This document shows positions 2,301 to 31,681 of a stretch of 64,000 bases of DNA, piece after piece. Under the pieces are notes generated by a model that worked only from the letters and a program-made list of their open reading frames with translations, had not been told where the DNA came from and searched no databases. Source of the stretch: Takakia lepidozioides (lineage: Eukaryota > Plantae > Bryophyta); NCBI GenBank assembly GCA_030704615.1, contig CM060732.1:39370001-39434000 (forward strand). The letters are read 5' to 3'. How positions within the stretch are numbered: position 1 is the first letter of the stretch; each line of letters opens with the position of its first letter. The translations under genes and the position numbers were made by a program.

Positions 2301-10380
<8,080 letters not shown>

Positions 10381-10659
10381 GTCTTCCCTTCAATGTTGCA
10401 CAACCTCAATTTGAACTCAGGGGCGGTCTCTCACAACTCATTCACCTTTTAGTCTAGTGGGTTGCAAACCAGTGCACGGCTTCTCCCCTATATGGGGCAA
10501 CCCTTTCTTATTGTTTCCTCTTCCCCAGTGGGGCTGCCCCTTTGTTGAGTCAAGTAACTGATCCTGGAGTAAGATGCTGAAAGTATTCAATTGGGGAGTA
10601 AGTATGCTGCTCATATGCTTATGGAGAGTGGCTCGGTGGCGAGTACGTTGATGGAGAGA

Positions 10660-13600
10660 AATGAAATGAAATGGTGCTTTATAACGTCCGCGAAAAGCCC
10701 ATAGAGCTTATGGGACAAGATGGAAGAACACATGAGAGGAACAAATCCAGAAACCACAATTAATGTTTTAGCGATTGTCTAAGGATGAAGGCCTTATGTA
10801 GGTAGGCTGCCAAGCATTTTTGATCCTCGTAGTGAAAGACATCAGCGAGAGTTTGGGTTCCATTGAATAAACAGTGGAATCTCCCACGGATTTGGTAATA
10901 TAGAGGGCAGAAGAAGTGTTCTTCAGTTTCAATTTCCTTGCTATGCCCTATGCAAGCTGGACATAGGCGGTCCTCCCGTCGCAGGTTTTCCCATCTGCCA
11001 GTCTCTATCCGTAGGTTGTGGGAATCCACCCTGAACCGCCCCAATGCCCTCAGTAGGGAAGAGATAAGGGTGCTGAAAAGTAATTTGGTCTCAAGATTCT
11101 ATCATCGTGGAGCACCAAGAATGTCTCTCGATAGAAGTGGAGTTTTGTCCTGAGATTGGGTAGCTTCCAAGTTCTCTTGACATGTAATTCCATAAGCTCT
11201 CTCTCCGAATGAGTCTGTTGCGGTCATGTCTGGATGTGATGTCCACCTCATCAGGGTTCATTGGTAATAGGAAAGCAGTAGAAAGTTTGTTACGTTGAAA
11301 TAAACTGTACACTCGAGCATACCAGGAGTTCCTGAAACCTGCAGCTTTTAGCCTCATAGATGTTGTGAGGGCCTTTGCCACTAGCCTTTTGGGTGGAAGG
11401 GCCTGCGATCTATGGAGAAAGATTGTAAGCCTGAAGAGGCTCGGATTGCAATGGTACACATGCGAACTATGCAGCTAGGATCTGAGATGGAGTTGTGCTC
11501 TTGGCGCCAAGCATTGCTTGGAGAAAATATGACTGTAATGGTTCCAAATTCTTTTCCCACCAGGAGACAGGGACACACCAGGTGCCCAGAACTCACAACC
11601 ATAGATGGTAGCATGTCTGACGACGGTGTCAAACAACCACTTTTTGGTCGGGGGATGCTGCAGATGTATTTGCTTGCATTTGGCTTGAAGGCGGACGGAG
11701 GCCGCCTTACCTTTAATCAATCTGTCCAAGGCAGTGGCTGCAAAGTGAAACTTGGGGGAGTGGATAACCAGACCCATGTACCGGTATGATTTCACAATCT
11801 CAATTTCCTGCTGGTTGAAGATGAATTTACGATCAGCCTGGCCATTGAAGACCATGATCTTGGTCTTGCTAAGATTGACTTGCATCCCATAGTCTTTGCA
11901 GAACTGTTCCAAAATTTTGAGATGGCGTTGCAAAAAGACCGGGGATTGTGCCAAAATGGCAAGGGCAACATCATCAGCAGGGAGGAGATCTGATTGGGTT
12001 GGTCCCCCATCCAATGGTACCCCCACCCCCATGGTTTTTTGATATGTAATTCTCCAAGGTGTCAATGTAGATCTCGAACAGGGTAGGTGAAAAGGGGCAG
12101 CCCTGTTTGACTCCAATGTTGTTGCGGATCTCGGCTAAGAATTCACCAGCGACGTTAACCATGCCAGTAACAATCTCATACATAAAAGAGATGGTACAAA
12201 GGATGTTTGGAGGGACTTCCACTCTATGGAGCTGTTGGAAGAGAAGGTCCCGAGGAACTGAATCAAAGGCTTTGTGAAAGTCCATGAAACAAACATAGAC
12301 CATTCTTTTGTCATAGCGTGCACTTTCCACCATAACCTGAAGAGTGAAGATGTGGTCAATAGTGGTGTTGCGACGGAAACCAGCCTGTCCCTCAGCACGA
12401 ATGCGAGAGGACTCAGCCCAATCATCCAGTTCCATGGCCACTACTGCCCCCAAACAGTTTAGCAAGTAATGATGACACCATGATAGTGCGATAGTTTGCC
12501 GGTGCGAGCCTGTCACCGCTCTTGAAAAGTGGGTGGATAATGCTCTTTGTCCACTCTGTTGGAAAGCCCCGTTGCACCACCTCATCGAAGTGATTAGCTA
12601 TAAAAGGAGCTAAAGTAGGTGCAGCATGCTTGATGAATTCACTCTGAAGTCCCTGAAATGTCCACTGCTCTGCCATTTTGCAGCTTCTTGATTGCCTTAC
12701 TGACATTGGCCGTAACAAAGAAAGAGAAGTGAAGGGGTTTAGAGGTTACACGAGGAGTTTGGGTTGGGGAATAGTACAAAGACTGTGCATATTCATGCCA
12801 GACGTGAATGTCAATGATTTGGGGGGGGGGGGGTCTCTATGAGGTTTAAGGAGGGACCAAAAAGAACGAGGATAAAATCTGATTTTAGCAAGGAAAGAAG
12901 ATTGCAACTTGATAGTGTAGGCTTGCTTTATGGATCTAATGCGGGACTTATAGTGCTTAAGAGCAAGATTAGTGGATTTTGGAGAAGAATTGGTATCAAG
13001 CAGTAAAGATTTGATGTGACGTCTAGCAGTCTTGCATTCCTCATCATAAAATGGTGCGTAATGACGAGTGGAGAAGGGTGAGGAAGTAGATGGAAGGTTG
13101 ATGGGAAATGATCGGAGGGCTGAGTCCCAAAGGGCTTGAGAAAAATGTGTAGGCTTGTTGTTAGGAAATCGTAGATGTAGAATGGAAATGAGGGTTGACG
13201 CTAGGTATGTTTCATACTCGGCGTCGTGTAAGTGAGAGAAAGGGGTATTAAAGTGGATACGTGGGTGTAAGGGAAGAGACGCAGAGGGAATCCTCACGGG
13301 GAGGGAGATGGAAGGAAATGCAAAGGAAAGGCTAGAGTGATCAAAATCCGGGTACCTCGTGATGTAAAAAAGAGCTTATTCTATCAGACTTGTTGGGGCT
13401 CCCCAAGAGATAGTCAACCACGTTTTGGCCCTTGTACGTGTGGCAAGTAAACTGGCTGGAGGATTTGAAGTTGGTTGTTCCATTGTAATTGACAAGCCCC
13501 TGAGTTTCACAAAACTTGAGTAGATGGTGACCGTAGCTTGTGATTTCGCAAGAGGAATCTGCACTTTGTCCCTCCAATTTCGTATGCGAGCGTTGGATGT

Positions 13601-15457: not shown

Positions 15458-15926
15458 GAGAGAGTGACGTTTTCTGCGGAATCTTCAAGGAAATATTGTC
15501 GGGTGACGAGTCGAGGTTCATTTGTGACAGGTTGTGGTACTTCTGATGATTTACTGTAAAGCACTCGTAAACTGATCACCAACTGACTAACCACCAACTA
15601 ACTGATTGGAGCTGTCACAAGCAATGTCAAAAATCATATTTACTACTAGGTGTTTGATGCTATTGTTGTTCCAGGAGCTGAATTGTATATTAGTCGGTTT
15701 GCTATTCCCATGCGAACAGTATTAGGTCCCCCAGAGACTGTCATATTCAGACTCTTGTATCAGCCACGGCCCAACAAAACCTACTGCTCAACACAAGCCA
15801 TCGAAGGCCTTCTGGGTGAAGAGACACCATAATTTACGCTTCCTTCGGGGAATGCGTCAAATATTAAAAATATTAATTGGTTTTACATGAGGGACCGTCC
15901 TACTGAGCAGAAGTGGGATAATATGT

Positions 15927-16985
15927 CGTAGTGATGGTGGCTCCCTAGTCTCCCTGCAGCGCGTCTACCAGCAGCGCACCTCCCGAGGCTTCGCACGCCT
16001 GGCCACACACGTGGGCCCGCCCCTCCATGTCTTCGTGTAGCTCGCCAATACTTGGCTCGCGCATGGCCCATAAACTTTTGCTTTACCCTTTGCCCTTCCC
16101 TGCCCGGACCTTGCACGCACTTCACCATTATGCAATTTTGGGGAATGATAAGAACAACCTTCCATTGGGTACTCTAAAATTGTTAACTCTAACAGGCTCA
16201 TTTTAAGATTGAATATAAACCAAAAGAAAATTAATTCTAGAATTGCTCAATCCAAACATATTGGTATACCCTCCAGAAGGTTGTTTAAATTATTTTTTAA
16301 CTTACATAATGTCCAAACAAATATGTGTAATACCTTACAGAAGGTTGTTTTTGCCATCGTGTCATCTCCAATGGTTACCTTTCGGAAGGTTGTGCATGTC
16401 AAGTTTAAAATTGCTTAATCCAAATAATGTTAGAGTACCCTCTGGAAGGTTGTTGTGACTCATTTTTAAACTTGCATAAATCCAAATAGATTTTCTTAAT
16501 ATCTTAAGGAAGGTTGTTTCTACCATTAGGTCATGCGCATGGAAACCGGGCGGAGGGTTGTTAATCTCAATTTTAAAATTGCTCTATCCAAACGTATTGG
16601 TATACCCTCGGGAAGATTCCGTGTCATTTTTTAACTTGCAAAAAAATCGAAACAAATGTGTTTAATACCTGATGGTTGTTCCTATCATTAGGTCATGCGT
16701 GATGGATACCTTTCGTAAGGTTGTTCATATCAAGTTTAAAACTGCTTAATTCAAGTTATATTAGAATACCCTCTGAAAGGTTGTTCTTATCATTCCCCCA
16801 GATTGCATAATGGGGACGTGAGGTCGGGGCAGGGAAGGGCAAAGGGAAAAGGAAAAGTTTAGGGGCAATGGGCGAGCCAGTTTTGGCGAGCTAAGTGAAG
16901 ACATGGAGGGGCGGGCCCACATGTGTGGCCAGGTGTGTGAAGCCTCCTCGGGAGGTGCGCTGCTTGGAGACCAGCGTCACTACCG
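15927..16985. mobile_element. Non-autonomous foldback/TIR element with ~270-bp inverted arms and internal ~60-bp repeats
   Basis: 15927-~16200 is the reverse complement of ~16740-16985 (e.g. CAGCGCACCTCCCGAGG / CCTCGGGAGGTGCGCTG). Interior repeats GAAGGTTG about every 60 bp. Its left end is where homology to the paralog at 25326 stops. Confidence 0.85.
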
Positions 16986-17796: not shown

Positions 17797-18072
17797 CAGT
17801 GAGTTTTTTCTTAAATGTGAAAAATAGCACAAGTGGCTACAAAAAATAGCCATATATTCTGTTCATCCATTGAAAATTTGGATAGAATCATCCTCATATG
17901 TATTTTCATCCATTTATATTATCCATATTTGGTGAATTCATCCATCTTTTTTTTTCCCCCCTTTAGAAGTTTGGCGATTTCATTCATGAAAAAACAGGGA
18001 ATTTGCGACAGAATATTTCGTTTTAATGTTTTGAGGTCACCATTTGGCGATTTTTCACCAAAAAAAACACTG
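17797..18072. mobile_element. hAT-like MITE
   Basis: Imperfect TIRs CAGTGAGTTTTTT..GTGAAAAAT / ATTTTTCACCAAAAAAAACACTG. Flanks GTAGTGAG and GTAAGTGAG resemble an 8-bp TSD. AT-rich TTCATCCAT interior. Confidence 0.7.
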
Positions 18073-20310
18073 GTAAGTGAGAGAAAAAATAACCTCTTTC
18101 ACTTATGCACCATGGAGGCGGATGAGTGGGACACCGCCCAGGAACCATACCACACCCGTCGGTAGCAAAATTGACCCCAGAATCATCTGGGTGACACTCA
18201 GTGCACTCCACCATCTGAGCGGACTGTTTGTATATAATTCTCTTATCACATCTGGTACAGTAGATAGAGCAAGTTCATGCAGGGAGTCACCACCCAATTA
18301 CTTAAAATCTACTGGTGGCAGTGCCGTAAAATCTAGAAATTTCCTTAAGTTGTGCCGAAGAGTTTTGTTGTAAGAAAATAAATATTGGGCGCTTCACTGC
18401 CGGATCAGCCTTCTCACTAAGGTATGTAATAACATGAGAAACAGGGCTGTCAGGAGTCCAGGACAGGATAGGAAGGCCCAAGCCTGCGACTGTGTGCCAT
18501 TTATCACCAACGTGCTTCCATCGATACCCTGTGGGCTCCACAGGTACGGAAGCCAAAAAGAGCCATTCTGGAAAAGATTGCAAAACACATTGTACTATGA
18601 CCTGAAGACAACATGCCAAAACCCATAGGACTTTAGACTAATATTTAATCTCCAGATAAGATATTTTTCCAAGACATTATTAAAATAATCGTTTTATCCT
18701 CAAGATAAGATTCTTTATGCTAGAGACAATATTCTCTTAGGCTTGACGTTCAACCTCAGGCCAAATATGTATAATACCAAATATGATATGTAGAGCAGTT
18801 TCATTCGGGACCTGATTCGAGAGTGGTCCAGAAATTACTATGGCCCAAGAATTAGATATGGGGCGCTTATGTAGTAAGGTGTATTAGGGAATGACATAGG
18901 GGGTCCAAAAAAAACAGGGAGGAATTGGCCAAATTTAGAATAGGGAATCTTGTAGGGTTACCATGTGTCTAAGGCCTTCTAGAAGGTCCCCGGGTTTGGC
19001 AGGCTTCTAGAAGGGTTTCACGGCCCAGAGGGTATATAAGGGTGGGCCCCCTCTTTACTACCTACTACTTATTAAATTAGTAAATAGTGGGCTTGTAAAG
19101 GTAGGGCCCCCAAAAAAAACAGCAAACATGAATCAATTAATTAATAGAAGCCACAATAAATAATAGATTATGGCAACGAGTAAACAATTGTTAACAAATA
19201 AGACAACATTTGATAGTGTGCACACAAGTAAAGGAGTAAAATTATCTTAACATTTATGGCAGTTTAACGTTTATAGAAGTAACATTTATCCAGGCAGACC
19301 AAGTCTCCCTGGATAAATGTTAACAGTCGGGAGTAGGGAAAAAAATAACATTTAGACAAGGTTAACACTTTTTCTTTTTTTGAAAGATAAAAGGGGACAG
19401 GCGGTGTTTTGTTTTTGGCGAATTTCTACCCCTACCCGAGTTCTGATAATGCAACTAATATTTCAGTTGCGGACATATCGTCAGACGAGTCCCACAATTG
19501 CCGACATATCGATGCCGACCAGCATTGTCTGACTCGTTACTTCCACAGTTCGCCTCTCCTCCGCCTCTCCTCCGCTTTTCGAAGAGCCCAAGTTTCGAGT
19601 TGCTCCAGGTGATGTTCCCATAGTCTCTTGCATTGCCCCCTTGCCCTTTTCTAATCTGGTTTTGATCATGTTGAGTCTGTGGAATTCCCTTAGTTGCTTT
19701 GCTTTCAGATTGCATGCATTGTGTGCATTATTCCAGTCCTGCGTTTACCACTGAGCATGAGCTGCCAGTGAGCTTAATCCACTGTGTTTACCATACTGTC
19801 CCATGACTGAAGCTAACGTTGTACCTGTAGCTCCTTGGTTGCTTCACTTTTTAAATCCACCATGTTCTACAGCATTGTTTCTTGTATGAATCTGAATACC
19901 TAGCCCTTTTGTCAGCTGCTAAATTGGCTCCTACCTCTCCTTGACTCCTTCTCCTGTGTTTGCCAGTATATTTTGAACAAGCCTTTGCAATCGTTCCTTC
20001 GACATCACAGGGCGCTGTTCTCGCCATCCAAGGTATTGTATCCCTTCTGACCTCAGTTGGGCTTACTTCTGCCCTGATTTCACAAATCTGCACCATGTTG
20101 TTTCCTCCCTACAGTGATTTGTGGCCGTGTGCGTAAGTTGTTCTGAACTAATCTCCGGCATCCGGTGTTTGTTGCTTGACGCAGTTCGCGTTTCAACCAT
20201 CGTGGATTGAAAAGCGCTAATGTTATAAAATTACAAGACCATCTTTCCAGGGGAAAATTTAACTATTGCTTGTGGTAGTAAAGGTTTTGGGAGATAGTGT
20301 GCTGCTTAAT

Positions 20311-22864
20311 ATGGATCACTTCGCTCTGCCTGACGGCGGTCACCATATCCGTGTCAAAAATGCCACATCCCTTGAGTACAGTTCTGGAGAAGGCGGGTTC
20401 CTATGCTATCCGAGTCGGCGGAACTGGTCCAAAGAAGACCTGCGAGGTGAAAATTCGTTTGGCGGTAGATCCGCAGCTGAAGTGCGAGACTTTTTCCAAA
20501 CTTGGCTCTACTTTGGGTGCGTGATCGAAGTCCTCGCAGTGAACGGGGTCAAAGCGATCCCCGCCGAATTCCTAGATAAAAGCAAAAGGTACATTACAAC
20601 CAAGTATCTGCCGTCCAAGATACGCAAATGGAGGCGAAAGGTCCAGAAAGCGAAGGACGGCCAGCACGAGCGTTGTTTGGAAAGGTGTCTCATGGAGACG
20701 GAGACCATCCTGAGCGAGCTATCAAAGTACGTCAACTACTATTGCGCCACGCCCGGCCGTCCTCGTCTGGAGACGGAGATCGCGAAACCTGAGCACGCGA
20801 AATGGCCGCTCACCGAGGAGATCTCCATGTCCATCATTGCGCTCGGGTATACCCTCAAGCAAGCCATGCTGTCGTTCCACGACATTAGACGCACCGCGAG
20901 CAGGTGGGGGTATTCCATCCTTTTGAAGAATCGGATGCTGGCGCAAGGTTGGTGTCCGATGGATGTTCGGAGAAGTCTCTCGGATATGGGCATCGATGGG
21001 CATTACTATATCGCAGCGTTACCGAATCCCGAGGGGAAAGACATGCACGCGAGCAGGGGTTGCACGGAGGACATGTGTGTCGCGCAAAATATTGATGAGT
21101 CGACGTACCAGATGGCACATGCGGAAAACTGCGATGGCTGCGAAGATGTCTACGTCGATGTGAGTCGTGTCGTTGCAATCATGGACGCCAAAGGTACGCC
21201 GGTCATCTCCTGGAGCGAAGCGGAACAGAAACTACAAGTTGCGACCTTTGATAAGGACAAGTCGGATTCACCAAAGTACATAGCAATCTCCCACGTGTAA
21301 GCTTCCTACCTAAGCAACCGATCGAATTGGCTATACTTAATTTGTGAAACTGACAAACTTGTATGAACAGGTGGTCCGATGGAATGGGCAATCCGACTCA
21401 TAATTGTTTGCGGCGATGCCAAGTATCACAGATTCAAAAGATGGTGAACGCAGCTGCAGAATTTGGCAAGGCGAAGGGCAACCCAAGCCACTTTTGGATG
21501 GACACTCTCTGTATACCCGTCGCGAAAGATCTAGAGTCGTATCGACAGCTTGCCATCCAGGGACTAAAAGGTACTTATAGATATGCGTCTGCGGTGCTTG
21601 TGCTATCGTCTGACATTCGAAGAGTGCCATCAATGGCGAACGACCTCCAGAAGAGTGTCTGTCTGTATTTCTGCAATTGGAACCATCGGTTGTGGACGTT
21701 CCAGGAGGGAATCCTCGCGAACGAGTTGCTTTTGCAGTTTAAAGATCAAGCACTAAGTTTTCGTGAGGATATCAACGGGTTCGCTGACGGCATGCATAAG
21801 TCGACCGAGGACGGGCACTGCATCACGTTCCCATATGCATCGTCGGCGAACAATATGGGAGAGTTTGTCATCCTCCATGATTTCCTCAGGGATGGACTTC
21901 ATAAGCCTATCGACCGCGCATTGCAGTCGATAGTCGAGGCGCTCCAGTTCCGCAGACTTCAAAATTGGCTGATCAAACGCTGTGCATTTGCGGTTTAATG
22001 GGCCTAGATCCGAAAGATGTTCTAAATGCTACTGGGAAGGAAAAAGAGCTTGAAAAGCAGCGTATGGTGATCTTCCTGTCCATGCTGACGGAATATCCCT
22101 TCGACATCATCTTCAACACGCATGCCCGAGTACAAAGAGAAGGCTTCCGATGGGCGCCGGAATCTCTTTTGGGGATACCTAAGGACGGCTTCGTCAGGGA
22201 TATGAAAGATTGGGTGACTCTAACCCATGAGGGACTATCCCTGAATTCGTCTGGACTCTTCATCCCAAAACCTGTCATCGACCAGACAGCCTTCTCCACC
22301 CAATTCACCGCCCATATCCCTCGAGCCGGTAGGGAGCCCATCATCTTACAAATCAATGTCATCATCCCAAACCGGGAAAAGCTGCAGCAACCTCTTTATT
22401 GGGCACGGGGAGAGGACTACGCGGTCATAATGAAGACGACGTTCGAGGACGAGCGACGCCAGGAGGCTGAGGCCGCCTAGGGCTTTCCCTGCGGAACGGT
22501 GGAGATTGAAGATTTTCTGCAAAAACGCAATTACTTGCAAGCATCTTTAGGACGACCCTCGCACGACGCCGTGATCGGGATTGTCCGGGAGGTGAAGCGG
22601 GATAGTGGAGATGGAGTTGAGTACATACGCTTGCGACATGAATGCCTCGCAAGCGTTGTGTGGATGAATCCTTCCGCCTTGCTCGACGGCTCTTGGAAGG
22701 ATGTCGAAGACGATGAATCGGTTGTCACTGGCGCTCTGGCGAAGGCTTCGGTTGGAGATGAAGGTAACAAGGCAGGTACAGATGGAGACGTGGGCAACGA
22801 CGCCACTCATACTTCAATTCGGTGCGAATTTTTGCACAAGAAAACGAAGTGGTATCTTTTGTGA
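20311..22864 (+). pseudogene. Fungal-type HET (heterokaryon incompatibility) domain gene, probable horizontal transfer, disrupted
   Basis: Exon 1 20311-21296, intron 21297-21370 (GTAAGC..CTGAC..CAG), exon 2 21371-22864. Spliced motifs YIAISHVWSDGMGNP, FWMDTLCIP, VLVL, WNHRLWTFQEG, plus N-terminal MDH..F..QTWLYFG..GWCP and later FRWAP, as in ascomycete HET proteins. Frameshift ~21955 and in-frame TAG 22478-22480. Confidence 0.88.
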
Positions 22865-23084
22865 AACTCGTGGAACTTGGCTATTACACAATATTTTTTC
22901 TTAATTACAAGTATGGTATATTTGCATCTTGAGACTTCTACAAGCCATACTTCGGAGGTATTACTTTTATATGTTTCATAGACATGACAACAATATTTAT
23001 GGCGAGAGCATTGTTCTCATTTTTGGCGATTTTATTTATTTTTATCTCTAATAATATAATATAATATTTTGTCCCATGGATGAT

Positions 23085-23190
23085 ACCTCCAAACTTGTCC
23101 AAATACGATGAACATAATGGATGAATGCGTCAAATATGGATGATATGAATGGATGCTAGTACACAGGAGGATGATTCTATCCAAATTTCA
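23085..23190 (-). mobile_element. Truncated inverted copy of the 17797-18072 MITE
   Basis: ATGGATGAAT..AAATATGGAT..GAGGATGATTCTATCCAAATTTC matches the reverse complement of ~17870-17946. It ends at the duplication breakpoint. Confidence 0.75.
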
Positions 23191-23912
23191 AAGTGCTTGT
23201 CCTGGATGCTGGTAAGTGCATAGACCTCATAAGTGTTCTAATCGTCAATTTCATTGGGAACCCTTCTGCCATGTATTATCATGTGTATTATCATGTGTTA
23301 TCATATTATCAACTGTGGAGTCCCCCCATTTGACAAGTCTGGTCTGCAACTGTGGTAGTCCAGTGGGCTTTGTTAGCCAAACATTGCATTGTACATATCA
23401 TTCTACAATAGTCACACAATCATCGCAACCCTTACCTCATTGACATTGAACTCAATCAGCGCTTCCCATGGACAAGCAAGGTGGAAGAGTATGACAGCCC
23501 TATGATTCTACAGTAGTCACACAATGACCGCAACCCTTACCTTCTCTTGCTGTGACATTTTGGACTTAATCAGCGCTTCTCATGCACAGGCAAGGTGAAA
23601 GAGTATGACAACCTTACGACGCTTTTGGAGCAACTATCATCTATGTTTGCCTCTTTGGTTCATGAGTACTCATCAAGGTCGAGTGACTTCAGATCAGTTG
23701 ATAAACAGCTTCCAGCACAAGTCAATTTGCTTGACGAATGAGTCTTTCCTTCAATGCTGCACAACCTCAATTTGAACTCAGGGGCGGTCTCTCACAGCTC
23801 CTTCACATTTTAGTCTAGTGGGTTGCAGACCAGTGCAGGGCTTCTCCCCTATATATTACGACGTCGTATTTCAACAGTGTCGGGTTATCACGTTCTGTGG
23901 ATGGGCCGACAT

Positions 23913-24626
23913 TGTGAGTATAAAGTATGTATCAGATTAATATCTATCAAGTATCAGGTTGAAGCCATGGAGTCTCTAATCTGCTCTACATTACAACTCT
24001 ACTGCTTGCATTCATCAAGCATCAACAGATCGTCCTCCTCCTACTCCGTGCTCTCCCTCTTTCTGCTCAGAAATGCGCTCTCTGCCTCATTTCCCCCCAG
24101 TGATGTCCGAAGTCCCCCCAAGAAGTGATGATTTTTCCAGTCCTTGCTCCTGGCTTTATCTTCCTACCCGTTGTTCTAACCGTTTCCCTCACTAACCGTC
24201 ATCCGTGAACTAACATGTTCCATTCGTAGATGTTGTTCCCCATAGTCGTTCCTTGTCCTGCTATCCGTTCCCTATGGTCGTGACAGCTGTGTCAAGCTGT
24301 GACTGGCTGTGCGACTGTGTTGGGATGTGTCGGCTGTGTCGAGCTGTGACTGGCTGTGACGGCTGTGTCTGGCTGTGTCGGCTGTGTCGGACTGTGACGG
24401 GCTGTGATGGACTGTGACGGGCTGTGTTGGCTTGTGACAGGCTGTGTCGGACTGTGATGGGCTGTGTTGGCTGTGACGGGCTGTGTAACCCCCCCCCCCC
24501 CCCCCCCCCCCCCTTAAAGTGCGCTGCTGTCACCCCTAAGGCTCTTGTTGGTCTCAATCTGTGCAAAAATTAAGGGTACCCCACAGATCCCGTAAAAGTG
24601 CTTAAGTCCCAGACAGTCCTCTAACA
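23913..24626 (-). mobile_element. Truncated LTR copy
   Basis: Aligns to 26448-27150, including the GCTGTG minisatellite and the terminal AGTCCCAGACAGTCCTC.AACA. Confidence 0.85.
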
Positions 24627-24721
24627 GCAGCAACCTCTTTATTGGGCACGGGGAGAGGACTACGCGGTCATAATGAAGACGACGTTCGAGGACGAGCGAC
24701 GCCAGGAGGCTGAGGCCGCCT
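24627..24721 (+). repeat. Exact 95-nt copy of HET coding sequence (filler DNA)
   Basis: Identical to 22384-22478 by direct comparison. Confidence 0.95.
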
Positions 24722-25801
24722 TGAGCCCCTTTGTTGAGTCAAGTAATTGACCCTGGAGTAAGATGTTGAAAGTATCTAATTGCGGAGTAAGTATGCTGCT
24801 CATATGCTTTTGGAGAGTGGCTCGGTGACGAGTATGTTGATGGAGAGAGTGACATTTTCTGTGAAATATTCAAGGAAATATTGTCGGGTGACCAGTCGAG
24901 GTTCATCTCTGACAGGTTGTGGTACTTCTGACAATTTACTGTAAAGCACTTGTAAACTGATCACCAACTAAATAATCTCCAATTGACTAACCACCAACTA
25001 ACTGATTGGAGCTGTCACAAGCAATGTCAAAAATTATATTTACTGCTAGGTGTTTGATGCTATTGTTGTTCCAGGAGCTGAATTGTATAGTAGTCGTTTT
25101 GCTATTCCCATGCGAACAGTATCAGGTCCCCCAGAGACTGTCATATTCATACTCACGTATCAGCCACGGCCCAACAGAGCCTACTGCTCAACACAGGCCA
25201 TCGAGGGCCTTCTGGGTGAAGAGACACCATAATTTACGCTTCCTTGGGGGAATGCGTCAAATATTAAAAATATTAATTGGTTTTACAGGAGGGACCGTCC
25301 TATTGAGCAAAAGTGGGATAATATGTACTTTGATAACCAATATATAGTACATCCGCAATTTCAAAAATTATGTGATTTGCACAAGTGATCCTCGGTGATT
25401 GGGTTGTCGTGCGCATACGTATCGCTACATAACTACATCGCTGTCCAAACTATACCACATATATATGCATAATGAAGTAGTCTGCCACAATGATATGAAA
25501 ACTAAACTCACACTGTCTGTTGACACAAGAACACGAAATACAATATAATCACTCATTAAAATAAAAGTCGAGCCAGGGGCTCCCCAAGCTATGGGGACTC
25601 CACCCCACAACATCATACTCTCCCTCCATAAGTACACTCAGATGCTAAGCAGCGAGGGAGCTCGGTCGTGAAGATAAGATGGTTCAGGTGTCAAGCTAAA
25701 CCTGACACCTGACTTAATACTTGAACTAATTCCAAGTGTTAAATATAAATAACTAGATTTATTCTAGTTAGTTTCACACTGTGTTTATTTAACTTGATAG
25801 C

Positions 25802-27190
25802 TGTCGTGCGCATACGTATCGCTACATAACTACATCGCTGTCCAAACTACACCACACATATATGCACAATGAAGCAGTCTGCCACAATCGCTCCCCTAGC
25901 TGATGGATAGGTCCATCTAACTCCAGATAGCTATAAGATGTAATAGCCACAGCCGTACTAAGTCCTCTATGACTGTCCCTATTGTACTCAAACTCTATAG
26001 ACCAAGAGGCTGGGTACAAGAGTAGCCCCATCGTTAGTCGTCGTCTTGCAATCTGTGAACTTGAGCCAGGATCTCGTATGTTCAAGGTCTCCTAGTAGCT
26101 TGGCCTTGCATTTCTTGTTAGCCTTCCATGGTTGTATCCACTCCCACTATCCAATGCAATGCGGACATTGTCGCGCGGCTTTTACCCACCCATCTCTTCG
26201 CTATCCGAGGCGGAAACTCCAAGATAGAAGAGTTGGAAATCTCTAAGTACTCAGCCCGCTCAGAACAATTAGTCATGACTAACAGCTAGTGTATCATGGG
26301 GGTGTTTCCTATTTGTTTTCCTTCCCGCATTCATGTTAGCTAGTTACCTTACTGTTGGTAATTAAGTATCAGTTTGCTTCATCAATCTATCGGATTCCAT
26401 CAACTCATCCATTCATTCCACAGCTTCACTCAGATCTCTCTACACAGTGTGAGTATGAAGTGTGTATCAGATTAATATCTATCAAGTATCAGGCTGAAGC
26501 CATGGAGTCTCTAATCTGCTCTACATTACAATTCTACTACCTGCATGCATTAAGCATCAACAGATCCTCCTCCTACTCCGTGCTCTCCCTCTTTCTGCTC
26601 AGAGATATGCTCTCTGCCTCATTTCCCCCAGTGATGTCCGAAGTTCCCCCCCAAGAAGTGATTCAAGAATTGATCATTTTCCAGTCCTTGCTCCTAGCTT
26701 TATCTTCCTACCCGTTGTTCTAACCGTTTCCCTCACTAACTGTCATCCGTGAACTAACATGTTCCATTCGCAGGTGTTGTTCCCCACAGTCGTTCTCTGT
26801 CCTGCTATCCTTTCCCTATGGTCGTGACAGCTGTGTCAAGCTGTGACTGGCTGTGTGAAACTGTGATGGGCTGTGACTGGCTGTGCGACTGTGTTGGGCT
26901 GTGTCGGGCTGTGACTGGCTGTGTGGCTGTGTCGGGCTGTGTCGGCTGTGCGAAGCTGTGACGGGCTGTGTTGGCTGTGACGAGCTGTGCCGGACTATGA
27001 CGGGCTGTGTTGGCTGTGACGGGCTGTGTAACCCCCCCTAAAGTGCGCTGCTGTCACCCCTAAGGCTCATGTTGGTCTCAGTCTGTGCAAAAATTAAGGG
27101 TACCCCACAGATCTAGTAAAAGTGTCTAAGTCCCAGACAGTCCTCCAACATTACCCCTTCCCCTCTCAAAAAAACCGTGTCCTCACGGTT
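25802..27190 (-). mobile_element. Gypsy-type 3' LTR (~1.35 kb, TG..CA) with polypurine tract
   Basis: TGTCGTG at 25802 and ..CCAACA at 27150. The minus strand reads GAGGACACGGTTTTTTTGAGAGGGGAAGGGGTAA-TGTT (PPT then LTR). The same LTR end is repeated at 25405-25490. Confidence 0.75.
26826..27030. repeat. GCTGTG-based 9-10-bp minisatellite inside the LTR (paralog 24280-24487)
   Basis: Degenerate tandem GGCTGTGACG/GGCTGTGTCG units followed by a poly-C run. Confidence 0.9.
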
Positions 27191-28450: not shown

Positions 28451-31400
28451 TCACCAGTAATCCCCACAAGAACAAACCCCATCTTTGAAGTGGTGAAAGT
28501 GGTTAGTGTCCCGTACAACAATTGCACGGCGGACAATCTTTGAGATGAACCTGATGGCGGTGTGGCAGTCACCACAAACCCGAAGATTCTTGATGATGCA
28601 GAGAGGCGTCCCAGGCGCTGTGCTGATCAACCCAAAAGCAATGGCCAGCTTCTCACTGTGGTAGCAAAGAGACATTTTCTTTTGCTCCTCCTCCACATCA
28701 TGCAATACAAAGCGAGTGTCAGGTACATACCCTGCCTCCTTCATCTGCTGAGACAGTCTTCTCAGCTCAACATGGATCTCCTCAATTTTCGGATGCAATT
28801 TGTCATCTACAAAAAAAGTGTGCACACTGTTGCCGACCTCAATGCAGCAGCGACCTGGCTCCTTTCTAACCCCTCTGATCTTCATCATTTTTCTCACCTT
28901 TGCAGTATCGTCCCACCTCCCAGCTGCAGCATAGATGTTTGATAGCAACACATAAGTCGCAGCGTCCTGTTCATCCCACTTGAGAATAGATGTTGCCGCA
29001 CGTTCAGCCATCTCCACATTGCCATGAATCCTGCACGCACCAAGCAAGGTCCTCCACACAACAGCATCTGGTTCAATTGGCATTTTGTCAATGAAGTCCT
29101 CTGCCTCATCCAATCGCCCTGCACGACCAAGAATGTCTACCATGCAGACGAAGTGCTCTACTGTTGGAGTGACACCATGATCTTGACTCAGTGAATCAAA
29201 GTAGTGTCTTCCTTCATCCACTAGGCCAACATGGCTACATGCAGAGAGAACACATATAAAGGTGATACTGTCCAGCTTCAAGCCTTCCTTTTGCATTCCT
29301 TCAAATAGTTGCAGGGCCTTCCTGTGACAACCATGCCGGGAATACCCTGCGATCATCGCAGTCCATGACACCACATTTCGTTCAGCCATATTGTCGAACA
29401 CTCCCTTTGCATCTTCGATGCTGCCGCATTTGGCATACATGTCCACCAGGGTATTGTTCAGAATGATATCAGGTACAATTCCAGCTTTGATTATGTCACA
29501 ATGGACCTGTTTGCCCTTTTCCAGGGCTGCCAGGCTAGCACACGCATTGCAAACACAATCCAACGTAACCTGGTCTGGCTTCACCCCTTCCCGCTTCATT
29601 TGTTCATAAGTTTCCAAAGCCTCCATCCCACACCCATGCCGAGCATATCCTGCAATCATCGCGTTCCACGACACTACATTTCGTTCAGTCATATTGTTGA
29701 ATACTCCCTTTGCATCTTTGATGCTGCCACATTTGGCGTACATGTCCACGAGGCTATTATTTAGAATGACATCAGGTAGAATTCCAGCTTTGATGATGTC
29801 AGCATGGACCTCTTTGCCATTTTCCAGGGCTGCCAAGCTTGCACACGCATTGGAAATGGAAACGAATGCGACTTGGTCTGGGTTCACCCCTTCCCGCAGC
29901 ATTTGCTCATAGATCTCCAAAGCCTCCATCCCACACCCTTGCTGCGCATATCCTGCAATCATCGTATTCCACGACACCACATTTCGTTCCGCCATATTGT
30001 CAAACACTCTCTTTGCATCCTCTAGGCTCCCGCATTTGGCATACATGTCCACCAGGGTATTGTTCAGACTGACATCAGGTACAATTCCAGCTTTCATGAT
30101 GTCACCATGGACCTCTTTGCCCTTTTCCAGGGCTGCCAGGCCCGCACACGCATTGCAAACACAAACAAACGTGACCCCGGTGGGATTCACCTGTTCCCCC
30201 ATCATTTGCTCATAGGTCTCAAAAGCCTCCATGCCACACCCTTGCTGCACATATCCTGTGATCATCGCATTCCACGACACAATATCTCGTTGGGCCATAT
30301 GGTCGAATACTCCCTTTGCATCTTTGAGGCTCCCGCATTTGGCATACATATCCACCAGGGTATTGTTCAGAATGACGTCAGGCACAATTCCAGCTTTCAT
30401 GATGTGACGATGGACCTCTTTGCCCTTTTCCAGGGCTGCTAGGCTGGCACATGCATTGCAAATGCAGATGAACGCAACCTGGTCCGGCCTCACCCCTTGA
30501 CATATCATTTGCTCATAGGTCTCCAAAGCCTCCATCCCACACCCCTGCTGGGCATATCCTGCAATCATCGCACTCCAGGACACCACATCCCGTTTAGCCA
30601 TATTGTCGAACACTCCCTTTGCAACTCTGATGCTCCCACATTTGGCATACATGTTCACAAGGGCAGTGTTCAGAATGACATCTGGTACAATCCCAGCTTT
30701 GATGATGTCAGCATGGACCTCTTTGCCCTTGTCCAGGGCTGCCAGGCTCGCACATGCATTGCAAACGCAAATGAATGCGACCAGGTCTGGCTTCACCCCT
30801 TCCCACATCATTTGTTCGTAGGTCTGCAAAGCCTCCATCCCACACCCATGATGGGCATATCCTGCGATCATTGAACTCCAGGACACCACATTTCGTTCAG
30901 CCATATTGTCAAACACTCCCTTTGCATCCTTGATGCTCCCACATTTGGCATACATGTTCATCAGGGCTGTGTTCAGAATGACATCTGGTACAATTCCCGC
31001 TTTCATGATGTCACTATGGACCTCTTTGCCCTTTTCCAGGGCTGCCAGGCTCGCACATGCATTACAAACGCAAATAAATGTGACCCGGTCAGGCTTCACC
31101 CCTTCCCATATCATTTGCTCATATGTCTCCAATGCATTCTTACCACACCCATGCTTGGTAAATCCAGTCATCATTATATTCCACGTGATCAAACCTCGTT
31201 CAGTCATTTTGTTGAACACTTGGTGTGCATCCACTACGCTCCCGCATTTAACATACATGTTGACCAGGGTGTTGTGTAGAAAGATATTTGGCTTGAATCC
31301 ACTTTGGATAATGTGAGCGTGCACTTGCTTTCCCGCTTCTAGGCCTTTCATCTTGATGCACTTATGCAAGAGACAGACATAAGTATCTGAATCTGCAGAT

Positions 31401-31681
31401 AAGCCTTGGTTCAAAATTTGTAGAGCCTCTTTCAGTCGCCCTGCCTCACATAGTGTCCTTATTTTGGAAGCTGTGGTCATGGTGGAGGTGCATGATTTTA
31501 TCAAATGTGCCACTGCTGCTACTTCCAGTTGATCATCTCCCCGTGCAGGTTTCTTGTAGCTATCAATCCGCAGGGAATCATAGCTACTCTTGTGCTTGAA
31601 ATTGGACCCTCTTGCATGAATCTGGACCCACACTCCATCCCTGCTCCTTCAGCTATTCCTGCCACGGCACCAATGGTGCAT
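28451..31681 (-). CDS. PLS-class PPR protein with E1-E2-DYW deaminase domain (organellar C-to-U editing factor), intronless
   Basis: About 23 L/S/P motifs in 303-nt triplets, then P2-L2-S2, E domains, HSEKLAIAF, KNLRVCGDCH and CSCGDYW-stop. The in-frame ATG at 31681 is followed by TGA at 31651-31649; the next ATG is at 31480. Confidence 0.95.

Follow-up and report, generated by a model that had tools for sequence, protein, structure and literature searches.

A Recently Inactivated HET Gene of Probable Fungal Origin in the Nuclear Genome of a Moss-Like Plant

Here, we describe a HET-domain gene (positions 20311-22864) in a stretch of 64,000 nucleotides (nt) of Takakia lepidozioides DNA (GenBank assembly GCA_030704615.1, contig CM060732.1, positions 39,370,001 to 39,434,000), the whole 64 kb of which is referred to as the window. 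We consider it quite probable that this copy belongs to a small family of fungal-type HET genes as a paralogue that was inactivated recently, and that the family resides in a moss-like plant nuclear genome and reached it by DNA-level transfer from an ascomycete-like fungus. The gene is a clear but not unprecedented fungus-to-plant transfer, a further case of the published moss HET genes. A first-pass annotation, made from the letters of the window, had stated that fungal-derived HET genes are reported in mosses, which the literature bears out (PMC3493653; PMC7911284), and the novelty it implied for the locus is lower for that very reason. The transfer is unusually legible, with the donor intron still present and spliced by the plant. 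The interest of the locus rests mainly on intact sister copies, and less on the pseudogene itself.

Structure of the HET gene

Four pieces of the gene (20311-21297, 21372-21995, 21965-22477, and 22481-22861) were searched apart, as separate queries, and a profile search was run with full-length relatives and the four window pieces as separate rows. Read contigs (runs X1, X5, and X6 below) came from public runs labelled with one organism (A) in studies P1, P2, and P3 (dated 2017, 2021, and 2023), with positions 19000-24900 as the mapping region. The gene and its parts are as follows.

20311-22864, + strand: HET-domain gene of full-length fungal type, with the ATG at 20311, two coding exons, and the native TGA at 22862-22864
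19706-20032, + strand: 5' untranslated exon (minimum extent); RNA-like X5 contigs cover 19706-19997 and join ~20032 to ~20185
20033-20184, + strand: 152-nt GT..AG intron in the 5' untranslated region (UTR), skipped by an X5 contig, with splice sites legible in the sequence
20311-21296, + strand: coding exon 1, with a family-specific N-terminal domain and the first HET strand (YIAISHV), in an intact open reading frame (ORF) of 329 codons
21297-21370, + strand: 74-nt phase-2 intron inside the SHV/W motif, with a GTAAGC donor, a CTGAC, and an AG acceptor
21371-22864, + strand: coding exon 2, with the HET core (~21371-21950) and the C-terminal region to the native TGA, based on the Pfam match and collinear relatives
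21953-21957, + strand: lesion 1, a 1-nt frameshift with one base fewer than in sister copies, based on the change of ORF frame, the alignment to relatives, and read contigs
22478-22480, + strand: lesion 2, an in-frame TAG in the assembled sequence and its ORFs; homology resumes beyond it with the frame unchanged

The first ORF piece (20311-21297) has KYIAISHV as its C-terminal residues, the intron splits a Val codon in phase 2, and exon 2 restarts at W-S-D-G-M-G-N-P. A CTGAC at 21350-21354 stands 16 nt before the acceptor AG (21369-21370), and the intron that the first-pass annotation had placed inside this motif is present as described. At lesion 1, the frame passes from ORF 21363-21998 to ORF 21965-22480. 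Past the TAG, homology to relatives is kept in an unchanged frame as far as the TGA, and the C-terminus (KTKWYLL) matches those of full-length fungal relatives (KTQWYIS, RWYIL). The start codon, both splice sites of the 74-nt intron, and the native stop are all intact, and no lesions other than the frameshift at ~21954 and the TAG at 22478 were found in 20311-22864. A total of two lesions, the retention of the invariant exon 1 residues, and sister copies that are in frame and 1 to 4% divergent support the annotation's claim of recent inactivation. As it stands, this copy would encode at most a truncated product (the N-terminal domain plus HET).

Piece 21372-21995 alone exceeds the gathering score of the Pfam HET family (PF06985; 23.7 versus 22.5 bits; E value, 6.9e-5), although the intron separates the first strand from this piece; the Pfam check that the annotation had proposed is thus passed by the separate HET core. 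Membership in PF06985 follows from the profile score and from three blocks, ISHVW(S)DG, FWMDTLCIP, and NxRLWTFQEG, and the complete motif set claimed earlier (ISHVW, FWMDTLCIP, and RLWTFQEG) is found. The blocks align with invariant columns of alignment A4, and a Leu stands in place of one invariant Met of the HET core. A language-model search pointed to HET clusters only, and most full-length relatives carry PF06985.

The HET domain has been proposed to be a distant relative of TIR domains, its overexpression was reported to be sufficient for cell death in Podospora, and its biochemistry and structure were listed as not determined in a 2025 review (PMC12881547). A model of the HET core of a relative (predicted local distance difference test score [pLDDT], 75) has an alpha/beta fold. 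Among its best structural neighbours are several TIR domains, which match weakly (Z 3.0 to 4.0), as well as SIR2 proteins and nucleoside deoxyribosyltransferases; the scores of these neighbours (Z, 3.0 to 4.8) are below the trust level of the tool. Foldseek gave no match to this HET-core model at an E value of ≤0.001. The modelled fold is compatible with TIR kinship and does not demonstrate it.

The exon 1 domain (window 20311-21260; ~315 residues) yields a mostly helical model (mean pLDDT, 83) and keeps 22 of 22 invariant columns of alignment A3. Its invariant residues include C215, H246, C251, C256, and H270, a possible metal site. No PDB entry matched the model at an E value of ≤0.001 (Foldseek), and the domain appears to be an undescribed one, common to hundreds of fungal HET proteins.

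Origin and mode of transfer

An exhaustive HMMER search with the HET core returned 3139 relatives. The best was a Bisporella (Helotiales) protein of 847 residues with matching architecture, followed by proteins of Dactylellina and Madurella and by unnamed metagenomic ORFs. Sources were looked up for 20 of the 31 best HET-core matches, and these included no named plant protein; the 11 named ones were all fungal, as were the named ones among ten further matches. The exon 1 piece has 18 relatives, with 44 to 60% identity to their exon 1, and the best (60%) lie on soil-metagenome contigs of 1.3 to 1.9 kb; a metagenome scan with the exon 1 alignment gave nothing closer than this 60% relative. All four pieces are collinear with single genes in two loci (L001 and L002; 36 to 51% identity) and with full-length fungal proteins of 820 to 1010 residues, from the first residues (MDHF...) to the last. 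No plant is present among the 120 best full-length relatives listed in the profile search, where the named ones are all fungi (Pezizomycotina or Agaricomycetes).

Trees of the two coding parts agree. The maximum-likelihood tree of exon 1 pairs the window sequence with P0156/P0159 (support, 97/88). Both belong to a clade of 26 rows (100/99), in which the sequences with names (Geoglossum, Trichoglossum, Bisporella, Phialophora, Orbilia, Dactylellina, and Madurella) are Pezizomycotina; Mycena and other groups fall outside. In the HET-core tree, the sister is once more that metagenomic gene, here represented by its exon 2 (L005; 71% identity; support, 100/95), and both lie inside a matching 28-row clade (100/96). 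The gene is therefore nested among fungal sequences in both trees, as the annotation's proposed tree check would have it, with an immediate sister from soil metagenomes. Since the split from this sister, the HET core has a branch of 0.27 in the plant versus 0.06 in the sister, about four times as much, and the branches of the exon 1 domain are about equal (0.29 in the plant versus 0.27).

The 74-nt intron occurs at the identical position and phase in five distinct relatives (L001, L002/L009, L003/L004, L005/L006/L008, and L007), one of which comes from a contig of 144 kb that is fungal in style: its GH3 and kinase genes are uninterrupted, and it also carries a DUF3425 gene. Because the intron is orthologous in these five, it is taken to be ancestral to the family, and the plant gene to have been gained as genomic DNA. 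No poly(A) tract is present downstream of the gene in the window sequence, and with its ancestral intron kept, the copy is not a processed (retrocopied) pseudogene. Taken together, the fungal identity of all named relatives, the agreement of two trees, and the shared intron support a fungal origin and a transfer that was probably DNA-mediated and not through a retrocopy, as the annotation had proposed from the intron and composition.

Base composition sets the gene apart from its surroundings. The CpG observed/expected ratio (o/e) is 1.08 in 20185-22926 versus 0.47 in the rest of the window (PPR gene, 0.46; ABCC gene, 0.39; a long interspersed nuclear element [LINE], 0.39), and the gene ranks top of 246 windows of 2.5 kb, so the CpG richness relative to the MLH1 and PPR genes that had been noticed at first pass stands. 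As a control, GpC is alike in both (1.01 in the gene versus 0.97 in the rest), and the TpG/CpA excess of the host (1.28) is missing from the gene (1.06). Depletion returns upstream of ~20.1 kb, over the 5' exon and intron, and downstream of ~22.95 kb, which delimits the foreign segment to ~20.2-22.9 kb; the 5' exon (19706-20032) has a host-like CpG o/e of 0.14 to 0.46. The pattern suggests that a coding segment of foreign origin was probably joined to 5' sequence from the host, and this exon and intron would illustrate how the gene came under plant transcription. The undepleted CpG content means either that the segment arrived fairly recently or that it has long been free of methylation, and the data do not separate the two. 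Upstream of the first RNA-covered position (19706), a CpG-dense patch (19402-19596; 15 CpG in 195 nt) stands in CpG-poor host DNA and is a candidate promoter island for HET transcription.

A family of this kind is already known from Physcomitrium patens, in which a fungal HET superfamily of 20 genes was reported in 2012 (Yue et al. 2012, PMC3493653) and in which, according to a later summary, the "fungal regions" FR1 and FR2 hold HET, HLP, and CF genes and mobile elements (Sun et al. 2020, New Phytol 228:1169, summarised in PMC7911284). It is possible, though on the doubtful side, that the window gene descends vertically from the same old fungal acquisition and was later duplicated. Such a history has these published genes in its favour, and an identity of 60 to 71% to the closest relative allows an old event. 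It fits poorly with the lack of named plants among the best full-length and looked-up HET-core matches, since P. patens proteins were in the named sources searched; with a P. patens HET domain described as truncated, where the window gene is full length; and with a CpG content undepleted unlike that of every host gene in the window. Full length, the donor intron, undepleted CpG, and closest relatives that are only fungal or unnamed would favour a separate, later acquisition, without proving it.

Sister copies, expression, and host context

Read contigs from all three independent studies of organism A hold the HET gene. In DNA run X1, the summed depth is 155 to 267 over the gene, similar to 240 to 290 in the non-repetitive flanks, and a contig retains the intron at 21297-21370. 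Contigs of X5 and X6 skip that intron exactly, with GT..AG ends, and an X5 contig also skips 20033-20184 (152 nt, GT..AG); because two introns are skipped, we infer that X5 and X6 hold RNA and that an untranslated 5' exon lies upstream. The sister copies seen in reads differ from the window by 1 to 4% and are in frame. At variable sites, contig depth falls into three parts, a pattern consistent with three or four near-identical copies.

At 21954/21955, X5 and X6 have exclusively the in-frame form with one extra base. In X1, this form makes up 140.5 of the 192.7 depth, and the frameshift form of the window about 52 of 193. The window copy might be alive, its missing base, and perhaps its TAG, being consensus errors of long reads amid near-identical paralogues. 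The predominance of the longer form in read-contig depth suits that explanation, as does an assembly made from PacBio reads polished with Illumina reads (PMC13120521). We nevertheless regard it as unlikely: about a quarter of the X1 short-read depth (52/193) lacks the extra base just as the window does, so the frameshift is probably real. In addition, an exact duplicate of the gene's coding sequence (24627-24721, described below) is a recent copy up to the first base of the TAG, and is silent on the TAG itself.

Several observations weigh against our reading of the window copy as an inactivated member of a transferred, plant-borne family. Its nearest relative (60 to 71% identity) is a soil-metagenome gene. 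The RNA-like contigs carry the in-frame form only, differ from the window by 2 to 3%, and leave its sequence after 22926, 62 nt past the stop; being in frame and divergent, they show expression for sister copies or alleles only, and no RNA of the frameshift form was seen in the X5 and X6 contigs. The three-way split in depth would look the same for paralogues and for mixed alleles of a wild population. Finally, the TAG at 22478 is read from the assembled sequence.

Changes among the copies are mostly replacements: 21 of 25 readable changed codons alter the amino acid and 4 are silent, in a selected subset that mixes copies and carries little weight. They would fit neutral or diversifying change alike, and with that same little weight. 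At 22201-22205, in a variable part of the protein, sister copies have compensated one-base indels (+1 at 22201, -1 at 22205) that change 1 or 2 residues.

The gene lies in plant nuclear DNA between genuine plant genes. The host genes in the window are an ABCC transporter (~2.3-10.7 kb), LINE reverse transcriptases, and PPR-DYW, kinase, and MLH1 genes. Two features downstream of the HET gene tie it to this DNA.

23189-25326, + strand: host flank, a duplicate of the ABCC 3' end and the DNA downstream of it, with an 870-nt insert
24627-24721, + strand: 95-nt exact copy (100% identity) of HET coding sequence 22384-22478, 2.2 kb downstream

Within the first, 23189-23854 matches 9819-10493 at 95%, 24725-24848 matches 10536-10659 at 93%, and 24843-25326 matches 15458-15926 at 92%. 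The ABCC 3' end and the DNA following it (9819-10659 and 15458-15926) thereby stand on one side of a 7.2-kb HET-bearing segment, and their direct-order duplicate (92 to 95% identity) on the other. The first-pass annotation had put host repeats and an ABCC duplicate on both flanks; the host nature of the flanks holds, and the duplicate is downstream only, the upstream element being the ABCC gene itself. The 95-nt copy is wedged between a host repeat (23909-24626, resembling 26444-27150) and the ABCC 3' duplicate, and its source sequence stops one base into the premature TAG. The copy resembles filler DNA, or the product of a template switch in DNA repair. Because this fragment sits inside the ABCC duplicate beside a host repeat, the HET gene appears to have taken part in a local rearrangement of host DNA.

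These features also speak to contamination, in which the HET gene of a plant-associated fungus would have been misjoined to plant DNA. A fungus-like composition (CpG o/e, 1.08) and a fungal intron are what such a chimera would show, wild-collected bryophyte samples carry fungi, and among the short Logan contigs none bridges the gene to clearly host-only sequence. However, the DNA directly adjoining the gene, where the transcript has its 5' exon and 152-nt intron, is CpG-depleted and host-like. The segment lies between host duplications, and a host repeat 2.2 kb from the gene contains a piece of it. The gene and its flanks also have similar read depths, and all three studies (2017 to 2023) contain the gene. 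A chimera is accordingly highly improbable.

A translated search (tblastx) of both flanks against fungal loci gave no match that would indicate co-transferred neighbours, and five flanking ORFs had no Pfam match. An inverted pair of 72 nt (17874-17945 and 23117-23188) was considered as transposon ends and rejected, as it does not match the extent of homology in read contigs (~19594-22926). In the host DNA, the upstream copy of the duplicated ABCC 3' sequence is split by a 4.8-kb LINE (reverse-transcriptase ORFs at 11478-13297, - strand). Positions 24286-24495 and 26831-27038 hold arrays of CTGTGAC/GGCTGTG-like units that end in a run of ~25 C (24490-24514); with a summed read-contig depth of ~1.1 million versus ~220 for the HET gene, they belong to a very high-copy repeat family. 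A foldback at 15963-16971 has inverted arms of ~220 nt (85% match) around tandem units of ~168 nt. The PPR-DYW gene (28454-31633, - strand) is intact and intron-less, with 1060 residues and E, E+, and DYW deaminase domains; among named relatives, the highest identities are 54 to 59% (Diphasiastrum), followed by 45 to 54% for mosses, liverworts, and gymnosperms.

In the course of events that we propose, a filamentous ascomycete-like fungus would have been the source of the family, which would have passed horizontally into the plant as DNA with the donor architecture kept (N-terminal helical domain, HET core, C-terminal region, and short phase-2 intron), and would have gained a host-like 5' UTR with the 152-nt intron. 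Intact members (sister copies or alleles) are transcribed and correctly spliced by the plant and, by analogy with fungal HET domains, are candidate executors of cell death or defence. The window copy, presumed to have lost one base near 21954 and carrying the TAG at 22478, would do nothing or at most yield the truncated product. A bolder version is tentative: an early-diverging moss lineage might have acquired the family, as a complete fungal cell-death gene, comparatively recently and independently of the Physcomitrium HET genes, given it a plant promoter and 5' intron, and multiplied it with mainly amino-acid change into what would now be a cell-death or antifungal executor. If intact sisters do trigger plant cell death, plant defence would have co-opted a cell-death module from fungal non-self recognition. 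The main use of the broken copy is as a neutral standard against which the family can be dated and the selection on it measured.

Comparison with known systems

The closest published parallel is the HET system of P. patens, likewise composed of HET genes of fungal ancestry in a bryophyte-grade nuclear genome, in a multi-copy family near mobile elements. A role in plant-fungus interaction has been proposed for it, and two of its genes are induced by Botrytis (bioRxiv 10.1101/2020.10.29.361329). Unlike the P. patens HET genes, which are described as truncated, the window gene is full length, keeps the donor intron, and is undepleted in CpG; unlike FR1 and FR2, it has no adjacent HLP or CF gene in the window, and clustering of that kind is not apparent from the sequence. 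Orthology between the two families is unproven and possibly absent, as the closest relatives listed for the window gene contain no named plant protein.

Moss KP4 killer-protein genes offer a second parallel, as a fungal family gained by horizontal transfer with a tested developmental effect in moss (Guan et al. 2023, as cited in PMC11228847 and PMC12513842). Like them, the HET family would be of fungal origin, horizontally acquired by mosses, retained, and expressed; unlike them, it belongs to an unrelated protein family, and its presumed plant function is drawn from analogy.

With HET-E/D/R, HET-B, TOL, PIN-C, and HET-6 of Podospora anserina and Neurospora crassa, the window gene has the PF06985 HET domain in common. 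In those proteins, which serve in fungal allorecognition, HET is combined with partner domains such as NACHT-WD40 or a lectin fold, whereas the window gene has a different N-terminal domain, lacks an NLR part, and is not known to have a partner.

The nearest likeness in architecture is to the proteins of Bisporella sp. PMI_857 (KAH8589133.1; 847 amino acids) and Trichoglossum hirsutum (GP486_000359). The window gene differs from these fungal genes in its location on a plant chromosome, in the additional intron within its host-like 5' UTR, and in its broken state. It is collinear with both over its whole length, from an MDHF... start to a ...W-Y/F-I/L-x end, at 44 to 47% identity, with the same invariant Cys, His, and Trp positions in exon 1.

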